Sequence record: MT679221.1 | DNA length: 64,000 nucleotides | Reading direction: 5' to 3' (one strand) | Shown here: in pieces, positions 29,128 through 40,980 of the stretch | Position numbering within the stretch: the first letter of the stretch is position 1 | Layout of the letters: each line of letters opens with the position of its first letter | The notes under the pieces: generated by a model | Seen by the model: only the letters and a program-made list of their open reading frames with translations | What the model was told of the DNA's origin: nothing | Databases searched by the model: none | Position numbers and translations under genes: made by a program

Positions 29128-30261
29128 ATGTCGACGCTCGATTTAGATTTAGAAGTCCTGACTGACGACTACGATCGCCTGGTCGCACTCGAAGGTCTGG
29201 GAGTTAAGCCCGACTTCCCTGCGGTTTGCGCGATCCGTCAGCGTTGGTGCTTAACCGACGACGGTGAAGATATGTTGGTTGCTCGTGAATCGCGCGAAGC
29301 GATGGAGCGTGCTCAGTTTATGACTGATACTGACCCGCGGGCTGGCATCCATCGCGCAGCAGGGCGCATTACTGCGAAAGCTGTTAAAGGTACTGGAAAG
29401 TTAGTGGGTGCTGGACTAGGTGCAACCGCAAAGGGCGCGGGTAAACTTTCGAAAAAGCTCGCATTACGCTTTTACGATTTCGCGGAAGCGCTAGCGAAAG
29501 AACAAGCCGACCGTTTGAAAGAAATAACTTCGAAAGCTGCTTTCATGGAACGTAAGCTCAATAAGCTTAAAACGCGAATGTCGCTGCTAGATGACCACAA
29601 AACACTCGCTGCGGTCGACGTTCACACGAGTAGCTGGACGTCTAAAATTTGCTTTGAAGATCGACCCGATTTTGAAGCGTGTGTTAAGTTTTCTAAACAA
29701 ACAAACGCGTACGAAGGCGTCGTGCAAAAGTACACGGTTTACACACGCACCGCTCTGAAGAAAAGCAAAGCATTCGAAGGGCCGGGCTTAAAACAAATCA
29801 GCAAGTCCACGAACTGGGCAGTTAAGCGTGCTGCTGGGTTGCTTGGCATCATCGATCCCTTTAAAAAGGTGGAAGCTTTTCCTGTCCCTGGAAATATCGT
29901 TGTGGTTGAGCACCATAGTGGTAAAGTCAGTTGGGCAATTGCGCGTGACGGTGAGTATGGTGAAACCATTAAATCGCTGGATATGCATCAGTGTGGGAAA
30001 GCATTAGAGGCTGTGGAAGCACTTATCAAATCTATTGCTGCACGTGGAACAAAGAACCGTGTTGTGGGCTACACCGGCATTTACGAAGAAGTGGAAGCGA
30101 TGAAGTCCGAGCTTAAGAACCTAGAAGGGGATGAGCTGAAGGAGGCCACGTTACGTTACCGTAATGCAATGGCGATGGAAGACGCTTTCACCACGGCGTT
30201 GGTACGCGTGGCGGAGGGTCTAATGGAGTGGACGAAGCAATCGTTGGCTGAGGTGAAATGA
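29128..30261 (+). CDS. Probable inner-head protein with an N-terminal propeptide
   Basis: Acidic N-terminus with AxE sites (ALE, ARE, AME), then basic helical body typical of phiKZ-like head proteins. Confidence 0.6.
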   Translation: MSTLDLDLEVLTDDYDRLVALEGLGVKPDFPAVCAIRQRWCLTDDGEDMLVARESREAMERAQFMTDTDPRAGIHRAAGRITAKAVKGTGKLVGAGLGATAKGAGKLSKKLALRFYDFAEALAKEQADRLKEITSKAAFMERKLNKLKTRMSLLDDHKTLAAVDVHTSSWTSKICFEDRPDFEACVKFSKQTNAYEGVVQKYTVYTRTALKKSKAFEGPGLKQISKSTNWAVKRAAGLLGIIDPFKKVEAFPVPGNIVVVEHHSGKVSWAIARDGEYGETIKSLDMHQCGKALEAVEALIKSIAARGTKNRVVGYTGIYEEVEAMKSELKNLEGDELKEATLRYRNAMAMEDAFTTALVRVAEGLMEWTKQSLAEVK

Positions 30262-30725
30262 TGAAAATTGTTTTTGTCACCAAGCCCAACTCTCCGTATG
30301 GAAAGAAATACTACGCGGACTTGTTAGGACTACACAACAAGTTATACGACGATCAGAAAATAAAACTTGCCGACTTAAACGGTCGTGAAGGGTTTAATCA
30401 AATCTCAAAACTGGAGGAGGTTTGGGGTGAAGGTACGCTGTGCGCTTGCGCCGTTGATGACCGTGGTGTGGCTGTTGGCTTCATCACCTTTGGCTACACC
30501 AAAAAGGGACAACGTTTCCTCTGGGTATATAACTTTTTTGTAGATGAATCGGTTCGTTCACAAGGCGTTGGTCATGAACTGATCGAAGCCGTAGAGAACT
30601 ATGGCAAATCAAAAGGCTGCGCGTGGATGCAGCTTAACGTGCTCGGTAATAACGACCGTGCTATTGCGTTTTATGAACGTTTCGGATTCCGAACTGAATA
30701 CCAGGATATGGTAAAGGAGCTTTAA
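30258..30725 (+). CDS. GNAT-family acetyltransferase
   Basis: VRSQGVGHELI, NVLGNNDRAIAFYERFGF. Confidence 0.9.
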   Translation: MMKIVFVTKPNSPYGKKYYADLLGLHNKLYDDQKIKLADLNGREGFNQISKLEEVWGEGTLCACAVDDRGVAVGFITFGYTKKGQRFLWVYNFFVDESVRSQGVGHELIEAVENYGKSKGCAWMQLNVLGNNDRAIAFYERFGFRTEYQDMVKEL

Positions 30726-33193: not shown

Positions 33194-33230
33194 TAGGCAC
33201 TCTTCGGAGTGCCTATTATTTTTTTCTTTA
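33194..33230 (+). terminator. Intrinsic terminator
   Basis: TAGGCACTC-TTCG-GAGTGCCTA then T run. Confidence 0.85.
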
Positions 33231-33288
33231 CGTATGCTCGCTATATTGTGACACCACTACAATTAATTAAACTTTGGGGAAGAATAAA

Positions 33289-33918: not shown

Positions 33919-33955
33919 CCCTCTTACCTTCGGGTAAGAGGGTATTGTCTTTTTT
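33919..33955 (+). terminator. Intrinsic terminator
   Basis: Hairpin identical to 6514-6537. Confidence 0.8.
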
Positions 33956-33999
33956 ACAGATCGGAACAGTCTTATGCTTTTTGCTTCCAGTCCACTAAA

Positions 34000-34451: not shown

Positions 34452-34838
34452 ATGAATTGGTTTGTAAATGGTATCACCCGTCGCGTGATGACGGAAGAGG
34501 ATGATCGATGTAAACATCTTAAAGTGGGCTCTATAGCCCCGCGCTATACGGCAGAGTGCGACCCATGGGGCCGCGAAACGTATTACATGTGCGAAGACTG
34601 CTGGGAAAAACTGCAGGCTGCAATTGCGGCGGAAGAAGTGGTCTGCGACGACTGCAAAGGTACCTTCCCGAAACGAGATACCGTTGAATGGAAATGGTAC
34701 GACTTTGACCCCAGACAAGGGGATAAAGAACTTTGTATCTGTAATAACTGCGTGTCTTTACCGACACATTTAAACCGTGTAGAGAATGACCGTCGGGCAT
34801 TTGAACACGACTTTCCAGAAGCAACTTTCTGGGATTAA
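34452..34838 (+). CDS. Cys-rich Zn-binding protein
   Basis: CKHL, CEDC, CDDC, CNNC. Confidence 0.7.
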   Translation: MNWFVNGITRRVMTEEDDRCKHLKVGSIAPRYTAECDPWGRETYYMCEDCWEKLQAAIAAEEVVCDDCKGTFPKRDTVEWKWYDFDPRQGDKELCICNNCVSLPTHLNRVENDRRAFEHDFPEATFWD

Positions 34839-35521: not shown

Positions 35522-35524
35522 TCA

Positions 35525-35561
35525 TTAAGGGGTCTTCGGACCCCTTAATTTTTTGTCTTTT
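35525..35561 (+). terminator. Intrinsic terminator
   Basis: TTAAGGGGTC-TTCG-GACCCCTTAA then T run. Confidence 0.85.
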
Positions 35562-35610
35562 TACGCATTATCCTCATGTTGTGACAGCAATACCTTTTGA
35601 GGGCATTACA

Positions 35611-36612
35611 ATGAAAACTGTGGCTAAATTGTTTCGCACCAGCATCCGCACTGCCGAGTTCCGAAATAACGTCGGCAGCGATACTGTACGTGCACGCCGC
35701 CTAAAAGAGTTTCTAAAGGACGAGACTTATTCTGTTTACGTGGTGAAGAATAAAGAAACCTGGGAGGGTTATTTAGTGGCCACCTATCGACACGGTGACC
35801 CTACACTAACCTGTCACTATTTTGAGGAGTTTGTACCTGGGGCATTCGATAAAGTTGGTTTGGCCCTTGTGCTCGACCATACCGGATTCGAATATATGTC
35901 GTGCCCAGCACCTACTGACGATGTTGAACAAAAACTGGTCGAAAAAGGGTTTGTTCTTTCAGATATCGTTTGGGCATGTCATTCTAAACTGTTTGACAAA
36001 GTAATCACCGCATCGGAAATCAAGATTATTTCTGGTGATGCATACGCAGAACTTACCAAGGAAGATAAAGACGTTATCCTGAATTTGATTAGCGGTGCAA
36101 TTTGCGAAGAGCTAGAATACGATATGCGTGGCTACTATACACACATTGGTCCGTTAGCAGAAACAGTAATAGCAAGAATTCAGCACGCTAATGTGGAGAC
36201 TGCAATTTGGCGAGACGGTCATGATATCGTCGGTATTGCCCAGATGCGCTTGGTTACACCAGGCGTCGTTGAACTTTCTGGTTTAACCGTTGCACCCACG
36301 CACCGTAAACGTGGCATTGGCCGCCGGCTAATGGGCGCGCTATTCGATTTCGCACAACGTCATTCCGACCAAGTCTATATTGAAACAGCTGCTGATAATA
36401 ATCCAGCAAATCACCTGTACGGCAACATCTTACGTTGCAAGCAGGTACTGCGTACACTAACGTTGAAACGCGATCCTGAACTTATTAGCTGGAAACGGGT
36501 GAATGGGAACCGCGCCGATCGAGTGCTGAAAGAAGAACCTAGCATTCCGGTGGAGACTACAACCAGGCTGACTATCAGTGATATGTTTCAATCTGGCATG
36601 AGAGGATGTTAA
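35611..36612 (+). CDS. Tandem GNAT protein (intact C-terminal domain, degenerate N-terminal domain; start revised from 35488)
   Basis: LTVAPTHRKRGIGRRLM and DNNPANHLY; N-terminal half ends LVEKGF; GAGG SD. Confidence 0.8.
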   Translation: MKTVAKLFRTSIRTAEFRNNVGSDTVRARRLKEFLKDETYSVYVVKNKETWEGYLVATYRHGDPTLTCHYFEEFVPGAFDKVGLALVLDHTGFEYMSCPAPTDDVEQKLVEKGFVLSDIVWACHSKLFDKVITASEIKIISGDAYAELTKEDKDVILNLISGAICEELEYDMRGYYTHIGPLAETVIARIQHANVETAIWRDGHDIVGIAQMRLVTPGVVELSGLTVAPTHRKRGIGRRLMGALFDFAQRHSDQVYIETAADNNPANHLYGNILRCKQVLRTLTLKRDPELISWKRVNGNRADRVLKEEPSIPVETTTRLTISDMFQSGMRGC

Positions 36613-36615
36613 CGG

Positions 36616-37434
36616 GTGATAAAACCAATTTTAAAATGGATGGGTGGTAAGAGTCGTGTACTGCCCGAGCTGCTACAGGTGTTTCCGGATGCTGAGTATT
36701 TCGTTGAACCTTTTGTGGGCGCAGGGTCAGTGTTTTTAAACACTAAATACCCGAACTATATTCTCGGCGACACGAACCCGGACTTAATCGAGTTACTGAC
36801 CATGGCGCGCGATCGTCCGGAAGCGCTGATTCTGGAAGCAAAGGCGCTCTTTGCAAATGGGACGGACCGCGGTCTCTACATGGAACGACGCGAGGGATTT
36901 AACAGCGAAGCAACCACGGGGAAACCTAATCTCCAGCGCGCCGCGATGTTCCTGTATCTTACACGTCATGGTTACAATGGTTTGTGCAGATACAATCAGT
37001 CGGGTGGGTTTAACGTGCCCTATGGTCAACACCCGAACGGTGTCTATTTCCCTGAAGAGGAAATTCTGGCGTGGGCAAAACGTTGTTCGGAAACCAACGT
37101 CGAGCTGCTCTGCGCGGACTTCCGCGACATCCTAAATAAGTGCCCATCTAACGCTGTGATATACGCCGACCCGCCCTACATCCCACTTTCGGATACGGCT
37201 AAACATGCGCAGTATCACAGCAAGGAATTTTCACAAGCTGACCACCGCGAGTTAGCGAAACTTTTAAAACAACAAGCTGCCGATGGCAATAAGGTCGTTC
37301 TGTCAAACGCAGATACGTTACTCACACGTGACATCTACTACGGTTTTACCTGGCGTGAAGTTCAAGTGGGTCGATATATGTCCGCCGATGCGAATAAACG
37401 TAAAGCGGTGACAGAGCTAATCGGCACCTTATAA
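36616..37434 (+). CDS. dam: DNA adenine methyltransferase, Dam (D12 class)
   Basis: LKWMGGKS, EPFVGAGSVF, YNGLCRYN...FNVPYG, DPPY. Confidence 0.95.
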   Translation: MIKPILKWMGGKSRVLPELLQVFPDAEYFVEPFVGAGSVFLNTKYPNYILGDTNPDLIELLTMARDRPEALILEAKALFANGTDRGLYMERREGFNSEATTGKPNLQRAAMFLYLTRHGYNGLCRYNQSGGFNVPYGQHPNGVYFPEEEILAWAKRCSETNVELLCADFRDILNKCPSNAVIYADPPYIPLSDTAKHAQYHSKEFSQADHRELAKLLKQQAADGNKVVLSNADTLLTRDIYYGFTWREVQVGRYMSADANKRKAVTELIGTL

Positions 37435-37443
37435 GGTACCAAC

Positions 37444-38247
37444 ATGCAACTATTTAATCTATACGGTATGGACAAAAATGATCTGACCGTAGAGTTTAGT
37501 GGTCGATTGACCACCTTGGGGCAACTCCGTGAACGGATTCAAGATTTGCGACCAGTCGCAGACCAAGAAGACGACCATTGGTTAGTGTTGAGCAATAGCG
37601 GTCGTGCGCAAATGTATTTTCGTGGATGTCGTTCAGGTATTGTTTACTACATCTACGAGTTGCACGTGCTTTCCGAGCCCCTGTTCCACGAGTGGAAGTG
37701 TTTAACGCGACTCCTGGAAGTGCAGATGCTCGATATTACCTGCTTTCCGCATGACACTGAACACGCAGCACTATACCAGCGCCTGGGGTTCGAAGCTGTA
37801 ACGAAACGTGTGGAGATTACTGTCAGTCCGAAATACGGTTTTACGTCAGACCCATCGGTTGTCCCGTTGGAGACATTGTCATTAGAACAAACCCAGGATG
37901 TTTGCTATCTAATGCGGCCTACGCTAAAAGACGCAGGAACGCGTGAGATGCTGGGTGAATTAGCAAATGGTTTTGTCTCTGCGTTCGTGGGGTTGCACGG
38001 CCAGAAGCCGTTTTCGTTAATGCTTTATAAGGAGTTCCCGAAGAGCATCGTTACTGAGCAATTCTGCTGCCAAACTTTTGACCCGGTTGCTTACTCGGTA
38101 GAGTTTCTAAAACACTACCACGCCATTTTGCATTTGGCGGGACAGAAGGGTAAGAAGGTCAATATGGGCGTTGCGATAGAGCACGAGTTTCCTTCTATCG
38201 AAGGGTTGGAGTATCGTGTAATCACGCATCACTACACCCTTGCGTAA
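37444..38247 (+). CDS. Degenerate tandem GNAT-fold protein
   Basis: IYELHV...HAALYQRLGF motif B; no clear R/QxxGxG motif A. Confidence 0.5.
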   Translation: MQLFNLYGMDKNDLTVEFSGRLTTLGQLRERIQDLRPVADQEDDHWLVLSNSGRAQMYFRGCRSGIVYYIYELHVLSEPLFHEWKCLTRLLEVQMLDITCFPHDTEHAALYQRLGFEAVTKRVEITVSPKYGFTSDPSVVPLETLSLEQTQDVCYLMRPTLKDAGTREMLGELANGFVSAFVGLHGQKPFSLMLYKEFPKSIVTEQFCCQTFDPVAYSVEFLKHYHAILHLAGQKGKKVNMGVAIEHEFPSIEGLEYRVITHHYTLA

Positions 38248-38256
38248 GGAGAGAAT

Positions 38257-39069
38257 ATGCTGAGAGTTATCGAACGCACGGAGAGGATTCTGGACCGAAC
38301 GTGGTTGGAAGACCGTAAGGCGCTATCGTTGTTAAATGATATCGATCCTTCCACGTTACAAGACGAACGTCGTCTTTATTACCGAATCTTTGAAGTGTTC
38401 AGTCGGGACACAGTTGCGCCAGACGCGATCGTGCTCTGTCTGGACCACGGATATATGTTAGAAGTTATCAACATGGTTCGTGCTTTAGACGCCCAGTTAA
38501 CCTCGCTTGCGGATGCTTTACTCCGTTCAGCGGGGTGTAACTACGCGATGCATTTTACTCGTTCGGAGGGGGACGAATATGGACGCATGGGCTTTTGTTG
38601 CGAAACGATAAACTATCGCAAAATTAATTCATCGGTGCCTAGCCACGATGAGGATTTCTGTGGGGATGTCAGTTCGTTGTTCGATAGTAAGAAAGCGTTC
38701 TTGGATTGGGTTAGGATGCTTTACGGTACAAGCTCTATCTACTCAACGCTTGTCATGGGCGGGAGGATGATGTCGTGGCGAAACGCCGATAGTTACAAAT
38801 TGACAGTGCTCTCACATCGTGGACATCGCTGGGTTATTGGCGGATGGTTTACCGCAGAAGGCGTGGTTACTCTAACTCGAGAGGAGTTCGGACTGTTGAT
38901 GCACTGTATCCAGTCTGAATTACCGGTGGGGGATGAACTGATTTACACTTATCACCAATATACTGGGGGGCCTGCCGCAATGTGGTTATTAGAAAACGGT
39001 TGGCTACCTGAAAGTTATGTCTACGGACGTGCCCTGAAAACTACTAATGGAGAAAATAATGCAAATTAA
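38257..39069 (+). CDS. Hypothetical protein, possibly degenerate GNAT fold
   Basis: C-terminal PAAMWLLENGW resembles GNAT motif B. Confidence 0.45.
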   Translation: MLRVIERTERILDRTWLEDRKALSLLNDIDPSTLQDERRLYYRIFEVFSRDTVAPDAIVLCLDHGYMLEVINMVRALDAQLTSLADALLRSAGCNYAMHFTRSEGDEYGRMGFCCETINYRKINSSVPSHDEDFCGDVSSLFDSKKAFLDWVRMLYGTSSIYSTLVMGGRMMSWRNADSYKLTVLSHRGHRWVIGGWFTAEGVVTLTREEFGLLMHCIQSELPVGDELIYTYHQYTGGPAAMWLLENGWLPESYVYGRALKTTNGENNAN

Positions 39070-39337
39070 TCGTACAGTGTCGAAGTCTAAAGAAGTCGTT
39101 TACAACGTTGAAGACGGTGATGTAATGCAGTTCCGTGCCGTTATCGACGAACAGCACGTGCTCCAAGTTGTTTATCCGAAAGAGGAGATGACTCGTGCAC
39201 ATAGTCGCGTGTTGGAAAAACTCGTCGCGAAAGCCAAACAACGCGACGGCATTAAATCCTACAACGTTATGTACGGTTATCAGTTACGTGAGGTGGAAGG
39301 GGAGCTGTTAATCACCCCTGTTCCGGTAACGGCGTAA
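39059..39337 (+). CDS. Hypothetical protein
   Basis: GGAG SD before ATG39059. Confidence 0.7.
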   Translation: MQINRTVSKSKEVVYNVEDGDVMQFRAVIDEQHVLQVVYPKEEMTRAHSRVLEKLVAKAKQRDGIKSYNVMYGYQLREVEGELLITPVPVTA

Positions 39338-39377: not shown

Positions 39378-39860
39378 ATGGATATGATCGAATTAGGTCA
39401 GCTCCCTCAGCACGATTTTGATTTAGGCGTGCGTCATGAGGAAGGGGCCGACGCGAACACACTTATGGCCCGCTACTACGAGCTACTGACCGGTCAACCG
39501 TTGGACGATGAACACATCAACCGTTTTGAAAAACTGTTGGCACAACTCATCACCTCTAACGCAGAACGCATTGGCATGTTGAACGAAATGAACTTTGCCG
39601 ATGTAGAGCCATCAGATGCTCAGAAGATTCTTATCGATGGTCCTGTGCCGAGCGATGAAGTACAAGACCTTCTGGCAGGTATCCGTGCAGGCTTCGATGA
39701 AGCTGCTGAGAAATACGCGGAAGAGCTGGCAGATGTCGATTTGGCTGCGCCGGTTGACCCGAATCCGTCTGCAGAGGAGACAGCGGCTGCGAAATTGAAA
39801 CTCGCGCGCTTTATCTGCGCAGCCGTCCTGACAGACGACCGCGAAGAAAACCAACTGTAA
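39378..39860 (+). CDS. Acidic hypothetical protein, possibly head-associated
   Basis: About 35 D/E against about 12 K/R; several AxE sites; GAGG SD. Confidence 0.7.
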   Translation: MDMIELGQLPQHDFDLGVRHEEGADANTLMARYYELLTGQPLDDEHINRFEKLLAQLITSNAERIGMLNEMNFADVEPSDAQKILIDGPVPSDEVQDLLAGIRAGFDEAAEKYAEELADVDLAAPVDPNPSAEETAAAKLKLARFICAAVLTDDREENQL

Positions 39861-39956
39861 GGTTTGCCTCCTTGCCCACGGGTGAGGGGGTCCCTTTTTA
39901 TTTACATCAGTCCACTAACTTATGTGAAACAACCCACGTAAAGAGGAATTAAGAGA

Positions 39957-40940: not shown

Positions 40941-40980
40941 CCCTACCTAACTTCGGTTAGGTAGGGTTCTTTTTATTTTT
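40941..40980 (+). terminator. Intrinsic terminator
   Basis: CCCTACCTAAC-TTCG-GTTAGGTAGGG then T-rich tail. Confidence 0.85.

Follow-up and report, generated by a model that had tools for sequence, protein, structure and literature searches.

Does a Dam methyltransferase gene that sits tightly packed among GNAT-like genes in a nucleus-forming jumbo phage belong to a joint DNA modification pathway, or are the two kinds of gene merely neighbors? The window, by which we mean the whole 64,000-nucleotide stretch of DNA analyzed here, is Proteus phage 7 (100% match to MT679221), a nucleus-forming giant Salmonella/Proteus phage of the species Seoulvirus SPN3US. The original prediction for this locus favored a Mom-like joint adenine-modification pathway or a Dam-regulating complex, with unrelated neighbors as its fallback, and it is the fallback that lies closest to the evidence. 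In the reading we consider probable, SPN3US-like jumbo phages transcribe the locus as a single unit of six genes, which brings together two separable things, a lineage-specific array of paralogs and an orphan Dam.

The unit begins after a strong terminator, as had been predicted: an intrinsic-type hairpin with an 11-bp stem, a TTCG loop, and a T-run (35524..35549, plus strand, like all features below) ends the upstream unit. The genes that follow are homologs of gp104 (35611..36612, 333 aa), Dam (36616..37434, 272 aa, with a GTG start), gp106 (37444..38247, 267 aa), gp107 (38257..39069, 270 aa), gp108 (39059..39337, 92 aa), and gp109 (39378..39860, 160 aa, strongly acidic with a pI of 4.1), each of which we refer to by its gp number or as Dam. 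Shine-Dalgarno sequences are present, and the spacings from gp104 to gp108 are 3, 9, 9, and −11 nt. The predicted gaps of 3 to 9 nt among the first four genes were thus exact, and two parts of the unit had been missed, namely gp108, which overlaps gp107 by 11 nt, and an extension through gp109. The latter is the final gene ahead of the next strong terminator, a second intrinsic-type hairpin (11-bp stem and T-run, 39866..39891), at which the unit probably closes. The position of this closing hairpin is matched in Huxley (locus L006, 6346-6367) and phiEaH2 (locus L003, 6430-6455), and both phages also have hairpins ahead of the cluster.

Between the first hairpin and gp104 lies a bipartite 27-nt motif, TTTACGYAT-N10-TTGTGACA (35560..35586), a candidate promoter or operator. 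It has exactly two matches in the 64 kb, where none is expected, the second being upstream of tmk (33227-33253). SPAsTU retains part of it, and more distant genera lack it. No GATC occurs in the intergenic region ahead of gp104, so there is no mom-like promoter under Dam control. If our preferred reading holds, a real transcription unit is now delimited.

Dam and the avoidance of GATC

The methyltransferase gene is intact, in agreement with the original prediction. Its product matches PF02086 (1.3e-53, 182.7 bits, cut-off 22) and TIGR00571 (6e-76, 255.6 bits, cut-off 114.85), and it aligns with E. coli Dam (EcoDam, 2g1p) over the full length at about 45% identity (4e-57). The catalytic DPPY and the SAM-binding FxGxG are both present and aligned to their counterparts in 2g1p. 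Among the seven EcoDam residues with described roles in contacting GATC (PMC4417163), six are kept (K9, Y119, N120, L122, R124, and P134), and Y138 is replaced by His. The enzyme is probably GATC-specific on this evidence. In PADLOC it best fits the orphan-MTase model, and no restriction gene adjoins it.

Situated between the first and second GNAT-like paralogs, Dam would be an ordinary orphan Dam-family methyltransferase, which most likely uses SAM to place m6A at GATC on phage DNA; we found no paper that reports this mark for the phage. Such methylation would shield the remaining GATC sites from methylation-sensitive, GATC-directed nucleases, for example MutH or restriction of the DpnII/MboI type, and the anti-restriction role originally suggested for the locus is plausible for Dam as an anti-restriction or anti-nuclease function.

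Strong avoidance of GATC would operate beside this protection. The observed/expected ratio for GATC in the window is 0.39, the lowest of the 16 palindromic 4-mers. In a comparison of three genomes made without phylogenetic control, GATC was strongly avoided in the two that carry Dam (0.39 here and 0.31 in Huxley), and in CR5, which has no Dam, the avoidance was about twice as strong (0.17; P = 2e-11 and 0.002). This pattern fits ordinary protective GATC methylation. If our preferred reading holds, a nucleus-forming phage that both avoids GATC and carries Dam bears on the question of what still endangers DNA enclosed by a protein shell.

The three GNAT-like proteins

gp104 matches Pfam Acetyltransf_1 over aa 194-270 (2.3e-14, 54.1 bits, cut-off 20.7) as well as phrog_8663, and its acetyl-CoA loop, of the R-x-x-G-x-G type, is intact (R-K-R-G-I-G). 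Matches to GNAT models are confined to residues ~188-272, and GNAT matches in the PDB cover the C-terminal domain only. For aa 1-170, no domain model matched, and an hhalign comparison of the N-terminal with the C-terminal half showed nothing. Both halves are covered when gp104 is aligned with the GNAT1 and GNAT2 families of CR5 (hhalign, 99.2% and 98.9%), and a two-domain model of gp107 (pLDDT 62) aligns with gp104 orthologs in BFVD over ~300 columns in Foldseek. The tandem GNAT of the original prediction therefore stands for the C-terminal domain, while the N-terminal half may be GNAT-like by extension from these alignments.

Neither gp106 nor gp107 matched Pfam, NCBIfam, or PDB sequences, and gp106 did not do so when searched as a profile either. 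That these two are GNAT-like, as had been proposed, now draws on indirect evidence, in the form of profile-profile bridging for gp106 and Foldseek for gp107. The gp106 family is confined to this phage clade, with only 13 relatives among 1.84 billion representatives. In hhalign, gp106 aligned co-linearly with the CR5 GNAT2 family (62.6%, E 7e-5, 153 columns), the third CR5 paralog (26%), and the gp104 family (18.8%), all below conventional significance. In these alignments, R-x-x-G-x-G is replaced, and the loop position is filled by residues without G-x-G. The AF2 model of gp106, built from a shallow alignment (pLDDT 41), is too poor for fold comparison. gp106 would be a divergent, probably two-domain GNAT-like paralog.

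For gp107, no sequence-profile match to GNAT families was obtained, hhalign included. Its AF2 model is also of low confidence and from a shallow alignment, and the top Foldseek matches in the PDB were mostly GNATs, especially tandem GNATs (E 2e-3 to 0.1, TM ~0.3, probability up to 0.99); in BFVD, the Kwan gp104 ortholog was matched at E 6.8e-6. The model points to a probable tandem GNAT-fold protein. The acetyl-CoA loop is missing from both halves of gp106 and of gp107, and the two are proteins of ~270 aa with two-domain secondary-structure patterns and acidic whole-protein charge (pI 5.8 and 5.3). Elsewhere, the phage encodes a further, single-domain GNAT at 30258-30725.

In our preferred reading, the three proteins would be paralogs with two GNAT-fold domains each, and their genes, with the small gp108 next in line, would form a lineage-specific array. 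As the sole keeper of the loop, gp104 would most likely be an acetyl-CoA-dependent N-acetyltransferase, with a small molecule or a protein of the host or the phage as its acceptor. gp106 and gp107, having lost the loop, would most likely act as noncatalytic partners, adaptors, or decoys. Should this hold, two proteins of the model giant phage SPN3US now labeled "hypothetical" can provisionally be called degenerate paralogs of the gp104 GNAT.

Separability of the two parts and rival readings

The arrangement of Dam and GNAT-like genes goes beyond chance insofar as four genera keep it, at protein identities of 22-54%, although their genomes are collinear over the whole region. In Derbicusvirus, all four loci examined (CR5, Derbicus, Phobos, and pEa_SNUABM_38) contain tmk, GNAT1, GNAT2, a third paralog, and a gp108-like gene, and Dam is absent from the array; Pfam values (6e-15 for GNAT1 and 3e-9 for GNAT2) and gp108 homology were checked in CR5 alone. 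A tblastn search of the whole CR5 genome, the only Derbicusvirus searched genome-wide, found no Dam (best E 0.077). phiEaH2 retains Dam, gp106, and gp107 and lacks gp104. gp108 comes after the third GNAT-like gene in every genus, the Dam-less Derbicusvirus included, with 45-93% identity across genera (for CR5_102, 48% at E 1e-14 to 2e-17). Since each part is found on its own in close relatives, Dam and the GNAT-like genes are probably neighbors and not a joint pathway. The neighborhood conservation that the original prediction named as a check is thus real across four genera and broken in Derbicusvirus and phiEaH2, which speaks against both the joint pathway and the Dam-regulating complex, as does the lack of GATC upstream of gp104. 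As a counterpoint, the tight coupling and co-transcription of Dam with GNAT-like genes in four genera would also fit a functional partnership.

One alternative sharpens half of our explanation. The three GNAT-like proteins may be fast-evolving paralogs aimed at host proteins or defense molecules, with gp104 acetylating, gp106 and gp107 binding, and Dam an unrelated passenger. The array does turn over between genera: gp104 is lost in phiEaH2, gp107 is replaced or duplicated (in Machinavirus and Wellingtonvirus, another family stands in its place or beside it), and identities among the paralogs are low. The additional single-domain GNAT agrees with this picture, as does a precedent for phage GNATs that modify host RNA polymerase (Rac, cited in PMC7824862). 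However, no PADLOC or anti-defense family was matched, and the neighboring genes, HTH gp101 and gp102, show much the same divergence (33-35%), so the rate of the array is not exceptional. We regard this more specific version as possible but rather unlikely.

It is more doubtful still that, in the Dam-carrying genera, gp106 and/or gp107 bind Dam and adjust how active or how specific it is, or where it is located (for example, inside or outside the phage nucleus), without modifying DNA themselves. In its favor, Dam and gp106 are separated by at most 9 nt or overlap in every Dam-carrying locus examined, the gp106 family was found only in Dam-carrying phages (searches with Dam and with gp106 each list 27 Erwinia records), and the second paralog of the Dam-less Derbicusvirus still has an intact acetyl-CoA loop. 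The co-occurrence carries little weight, however, because it reflects a single phylogenetic split. Moreover, a different family takes the place of gp107 in Huxley and Wellington with Dam unchanged, and gp106 evolves quickly, with 22-31% identity between genera where Dam shows 53-54%; such a rate would be unusual for an obligate partner.

A rarer reading, to which we assign little probability, is that in the Dam-carrying genera the degenerate gp106 and gp107, having lost the acetyl-CoA loop, were either re-tooled as Mom was, to work on nucleic acid with another donor such as charged tRNA, and add a second, undescribed adenine mark together with Dam, or came to serve Dam alone as partners that govern the place and timing of phage DNA methylation. 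If true, a GNAT fold would have been drawn into DNA modification for a second time.

Least probable of all, and in our view very unlikely, is that the operon is an undescribed DNA-modification pathway in which a bulky adenine adduct is put on phage DNA by Dam, or by gp104, gp106, and gp107 using an acyl or aminoacyl donor in the manner of Mom, FemX, or L/F-transferase. This would suit the co-transcription and tight packing in four genera and the missing acetyl-CoA loop of gp106 and gp107, since Mom is itself a GNAT fold whose donor is a charged tRNA and not acyl-CoA (PMC13219725). FemX and L/F-transferase do appear among the lower-ranked Foldseek matches of the gp107 model (ranks 14-39, probability 0.1-0.6), beneath the acetyl-CoA tandem GNATs. 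Mom, however, was returned neither by Pfam, NCBIfam, and PDB-sequence searches of gp104, gp106, and gp107 nor among the best 50 Foldseek matches of the gp107 model in the PDB (copy to April 2026) and BFVD. No HTH-like insertion was identified in gp106 and gp107, both of them acidic, and the gp106 family has few invariant polar residues. In Derbicusvirus the GNAT-like array occurs with no Dam, and in phiEaH2 Dam occurs with gp104 missing. The continuing strong avoidance of GATC would not be expected of broadly protected DNA, and a review calls DNA-modification systems uncommon in Chimalliviridae (PMC13282480).

Relation to known systems

Phage Mu Mom and this locus have in common the involvement of a GNAT-superfamily fold, the phage setting, and a link between a GNAT-fold protein and Dam. 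Mom carries out Gly-tRNA-dependent hypermodification of adenine, and its expression is controlled by host Dam. It consists of one GNAT domain, which has a basic cleft and an HTH-like insertion, and in it R111, S124, and R151 are essential and D149 is also important (PMC13219725), whereas gp106 and gp107 are acidic, probably two-domain proteins. Mu lacks a Dam of its own, and its Dam link is promoter methylation, unlike the GATC-free promoter region of this unit.

Like the tandem GNATs (MshD, Eis-like enzymes, VipF, and the clavulanic-acid ORF14 protein), which gave the best PDB matches of the gp107 model, gp104 carries a GNAT domain with an intact loop in its C-terminal half, and its N-terminal half is about as large. 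It differs, as do gp106 and gp107, in that sequence-level membership in those families is absent, all matches falling under curated cut-offs; the loss of the loop from both halves sets gp106 and gp107 further apart.

The phage Dam belongs to the same family, above curated cut-offs, as E. coli Dam and the orphan Dams of enterobacterial phages (D12 class, GATC), and shares with them the level of EcoDam identity, the motifs, the six contact residues, and the lack of a restriction neighbor. It is distinguished by its place in a nucleus-forming jumbo phage within a GNAT-like gene array, by the His at the Y138 equivalent, and by a genome that still strongly avoids GATC.

The closest comparison is with the array of Derbicusvirus (CR5, Derbicus, and Phobos), which has the same tmk-adjoining position and tight packing, encodes proteins of the same size (278-296 aa) with homology to gp104 (hhalign 99%) and, less strongly, to gp106, and is followed by a gp108 homolog. 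In contrast, it has no Dam gene, its second paralog still has a recognizable GNAT domain, and GATC avoidance is about twice as strong (CR5). These Dam-less phages therefore offer a natural contrast for asking what benefit a phage draws from its Dam.

Organization of the probable gp104-gp109 transcription unit

The 4-kb region matched Proteus phage 7 (MT679221.1) at 100%, and about 30 other isolates of Seoulvirus SPN3US at 94-98%. These are Salmonella, E. coli, and Proteus jumbo phages of roughly 240 kb. SPN3US encodes a homologue of chimallin (ChmA), and the group is therefore nucleus-forming (PMC10643120). In the SPN3US annotation, gp104 is a GCN5-related acetyltransferase, gp105 is a DNA adenine methylase (Dam), and gp106-gp109 are hypothetical proteins.

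The upstream boundary is a plus-strand hairpin at 35524-35549 with an 11-bp stem, a TTCG loop, and a T-run. It is followed on the same strand by gp104 (35611-36612, 333 aa), gp105 (36616-37434, 272 aa, GTG start), gp106 (37444-38247, 267 aa), gp107 (38257-39069, 270 aa), and gp108 (39059-39337, 92 aa), then, after a 40-nt gap, by gp109 (39378-39860) and the next strong plus-strand hairpin (39866-39891). The spacings from gp104 to gp108 are 3, 9, and 9 nt and then an 11-nt overlap between gp107 and gp108, and the Dam, gp107, and gp108 starts are each preceded by a Shine-Dalgarno-like sequence. Because strong hairpins lie at both boundaries, and at the same two boundaries in the related phages Huxley and phiEaH2, we read the unit as six genes, gp104-gp109. 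The original prediction, a terminator followed by close-packed genes, described a real arrangement; its start and gene order stand, and the unit probably runs about 550 nt beyond its predicted end.

The unit sits within a series of four strong plus-strand hairpins (33919-33942, 35524-35549, 39866-39891, and 40941-40966), each with a 10-11-bp stem, a TTCG or ACGG tetraloop, and a following T-run. There is one hairpin per one to six genes, and in relatives hairpins recur at the matching gene boundaries. The 64 kb contain exactly two copies of a bipartite motif, TTTACGYAT-N10-TTGTGACA (33227-33253 and 35560-35586), against zero expected. Both copies lie just 3' of a terminator hairpin and 5' of the tmk and gp104 start codons, which suggests a promoter or operator common to the two genes; the motif is partly retained in SPAsTU and absent from more distant genera. 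A second word, CAGTCCACTAA, is found at 33988-33998 and 39908-39918, in both cases intergenic and downstream of a terminator hairpin; the first copy precedes the HTH regulator gene and the second precedes gp110. The count of this word by itself is within chance.

gp102 (34452-34838, 128 aa), which adjoins the HTH regulator in four genera, has nine cysteines, several as CxxC pairs, a pattern that suggests a zinc-binding protein. With 73 phage records, Derbicusvirus included, gp109 is conserved more broadly than the GNAT-like genes; in CR5 its homologue lies about 9 kb from the GNAT array. That gp109 mimics DNA in the manner of ArdA or Ocr is only a thought, and one that we set aside: the protein is strongly acidic (pI 4.1; 35 Asp+Glu versus 12 Lys+Arg), yet zero family matches support it. 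Eleven SPFM records (LR535901, LR535903-LR535908, LR535911-LR535913, and LR535917) match this region as at least 40 short pieces, with differing ORF calls, a picture that points to error-rich assembly, not to biology. In SEGD1 (KU726251.1), which lacks feature annotation here, the gp104 homologue (window 35611-36612) matches as two pieces and may contain one break.

A clade-restricted array of probable GNAT-like paralogues

Residues ~188-272 of gp104 form a bona fide GNAT domain with an R-x-x-G-x-G acetyl-CoA loop. The protein had been proposed as a tandem GNAT; this holds for the C-terminal domain, and the N-terminal 170 residues matched nothing in family and structure-sequence searches.

Neither gp106 nor gp107 gave a meaningful match to Pfam, NCBIfam, PADLOC, or PDB sequences, whether searched singly or as family profiles. 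BLASTP detected no similarity between any pair of gp104, gp106, and gp107, domain-by-domain hhalign of the three families gave weak co-linear matches at most, and searching every window ORF by HMM yielded no further paralogues. Both families are clade-restricted, with 13 relatives of gp106 among 1.84 billion representative proteins and 23 of gp107 among 5.8 billion. An IMG/VR scan with gp106 recovered SPN3US itself and nothing else.

AlphaFold2 models of the two proteins were built from shallow alignments (4 and 7 sequences). At pLDDT 41 the gp106 model was unusable, and searching folds with it produced noise. The gp107 model reached a modest pLDDT of 62, and most of its PDB matches have a GNAT fold, in particular a two-domain one: 3n7z, VipF, 2i00, ORF14 2wpx, 5kf2, and WecD, with E-values of 2e-3 to 0.1 and probabilities up to 0.99. 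In BFVD, its own orthologues ranked first, followed by an annotated GNAT of Erwinia phage Kwan (317 aa, E 6.8e-6), judged from its name and length to be the gp104 orthologue. A 276-aa Kwan protein with the length of a gp106 orthologue also matched (E 6e-3); unnamed BFVD accessions were assigned to orthologues by length and organism alone.

Additional evidence comes from the sister genus Derbicusvirus, in which all four loci examined (CR5, Derbicus, Phobos, and pEa_SNUABM_38) carry a three-gene array straight after tmk. It consists of GNAT1 (Pfam 6e-15), GNAT2 (Pfam 3e-9), and a third gene of 278-296 aa, and is followed by a gp108 homologue (48% identity); the Pfam values and the gp108 homology are those of CR5. 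By hhalign, GNAT1 and GNAT2 match gp104 across both halves (probabilities of 99.2% and 98.9%), and the third gene is a divergent GNAT1 paralogue (69.6%). The gp106 family aligns with the CR5 GNAT2 family (hhalign probability 62.6%, E 7e-5, 153 co-linear columns), the third CR5 paralogue (26%, E 7e-4, 205 columns), and the gp104 family (18.8%, E 1.3e-3, 200 columns). In these profile alignments, the 'LGF' segment that closes the N-terminal half coincides, as does the inter-domain segment, and the acetyl-CoA loop falls opposite a gp106 segment that lacks the loop's glycines. The cofactor signature is lost in both gp106 and gp107. Calling these two proteins GNAT-like, as was done originally, is reasonable on moderate evidence from the gp107 fold and the sub-threshold gp106 profiles, without a family-model match for either.

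Other acetyltransferases occur in these genomes. The window encodes another single-domain GNAT at 30258-30725 (155 aa, Acetyltransf_1 9e-18), probably a homologue of the 154-aa SPN3US candidate YP_009153389, which had no spermidine N-acetyltransferase activity (PMC9992855). The CR5 annotation lists two more small acetyltransferases.

Dam as a separable orphan methyltransferase

gp105 matches the Dam family models strongly (PF02086, 1.3e-53; TIGR00571, 6e-76), and E. coli Dam structures match it over its full length (4e-57). The GTG start is correct: translation from it takes in the conserved N-terminal segment, which pairs with E. coli Dam from residue 6 onward. The protein has DPPY and a SAM-binding motif. 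EcoDam contacts GATC through seven residues, R124, Y119, N120, L122, P134, K9, and Y138 (PMC4417163); six are identical in gp105, and Y138 is replaced by His. No nuclease gene adjoins gp105, and its best PADLOC match is an orphan-methyltransferase model. The Dam is intact, as had been noted originally, and we take it to be an orphan enzyme that is probably GATC-specific.

Linkage of Dam to its neighbors is conserved: the order gp104-Dam-gp106-gp107-gp108-gp109 is retained in SPAsTU and, with changes, in Erskinevirus, Machinavirus, and Wellingtonvirus. Cross-genus identities to the window proteins are 53-85% for Dam, 26-78% for gp106, 28-59% for gp104, and 45-93% for gp108. However, these genomes are collinear across the whole region (tmk, HTH regulator, gp102, and gp109-gp115), so the adjacency of Dam and GNAT-like genes alone says little. 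The exceptions are more informative. phiEaH2 has Dam, gp106, and gp107 without gp104. Huxley and Wellington carry a different family of roughly 250 aa at the gp107 position, and in Caitlin this family and a gp107 homologue lie one after the other. Compared as profiles, the two families match only weakly (hhalign 7-13%). These gp107-position loci span 4798-6359 in L004, 4841-5578 in L005, and 4764-5525 in L006 (Huxley). None of the four Derbicusvirus arrays contains a Dam, and tblastn of the whole CR5 genome, five consecutive record stretches joined unaltered as for the GATC count below, found none (best E 0.077). At E <= 1e-60, Dam orthologues are confined to phages also carrying gp106. Based on these exceptions, the conserved core is three two-domain GNAT-like paralogues plus gp108; Dam, between paralogues 1 and 2, is separable from it and was either inserted or lost there.

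Enterobacterial phages have long been known to avoid GATC, which has been ascribed to methyl-directed MutH cleavage. Against a trinucleotide Markov expectation, the window has 116 GATC sites in 64 kb versus 300 expected (O/E 0.39), the Dam-encoding Huxley has 69 in 50 kb versus 225 (0.31), and the Dam-less CR5 has 160 in its whole genome versus 964 (0.17). Among the 16 palindromic tetramers, GATC shows the strongest depletion in the window, with CTAG next lowest. Depletion occurs in every relative checked (loci L003-L007, L010-L016, and L020) and is about twice as strong in CR5 (window vs CR5, P = 2e-11; Huxley vs the homologous CR5 stretch, P = 0.002), in a comparison of three genomes whose statistics ignore phylogeny. 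Short loci of other relatives have O/E of 0.18-0.31 with Dam and 0.04-0.06 without. Such values are consistent with a Dam that protects the remaining sites in the ordinary way and partly relaxes selection against GATC.

We consider it reasonably probable that the locus is a lineage-specific array of GNAT-fold paralogues plus a separable, ordinary orphan Dam. Here, gp104 is predicted to be an active acetyltransferase, gp106 and gp107 would be degenerate paralogues that probably lack catalytic activity, and Dam would protect GATC sites. That gp106 and gp107 instead serve as Dam partners, as in a Dam-regulating complex, seems unlikely to us. The proteins are divergent representatives of superfamilies described before, in a phage whose genome had been annotated. 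Our literature search on SPN3US gp104-gp109, methylation of SPN3US-like phages, and Dam in nucleus-forming phages gave nothing specific, and we found no published experimental data on modification, expression, or localization of the gp104-gp109 proteins. As by-products, two proteins of a model giant phage, so far hypothetical, gain a provisional assignment, and Dam-plus and Dam-minus phages with differing GATC avoidance offer a natural contrast.

Comparison with Mom

The original prediction also proposed a Mom-like pathway in which Dam and the GNAT folds jointly modify adenine. We regard such joint hypermodification as very improbable, and the GATC pattern is not what one expects for DNA under a broad hypermodification shield. 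Mom moves glycine from Gly-tRNA to adenine N6; R111, S124, and R151 are essential, and D149 also matters for activity (PMC13219725). Mom did not appear among the matches of gp104, gp106, and gp107 in Pfam, NCBIfam, and PDB-sequence searches, nor among the 50 best Foldseek matches of the gp107 model in PDB and BFVD. With the acetyl-CoA loop gone, gp106 and gp107 could accept a different donor; FemX and L/F-transferase are among the low-ranked fold matches of the gp107 model, a lead only.

Among jumbo phages, Iyer et al. list Mom-family enzymes, fused to nucleases, solely in other groups (PMC7824862), and a 2026 review states that Chimalliviridae seldom carry DNA-modification systems (PMC13282480). 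In Mu, Dam dependence is a promoter-methylation switch, whereas here the intergenic region at 35522-35610 has zero GATC sites, and we rejected a mom-like Dam-regulated promoter. The proteins differ as well: Mom is a single-domain GNAT fold with an HTH-like insertion and a basic cleft (PMC13219725), whereas gp106 and gp107 are acidic and have two-domain secondary-structure patterns.
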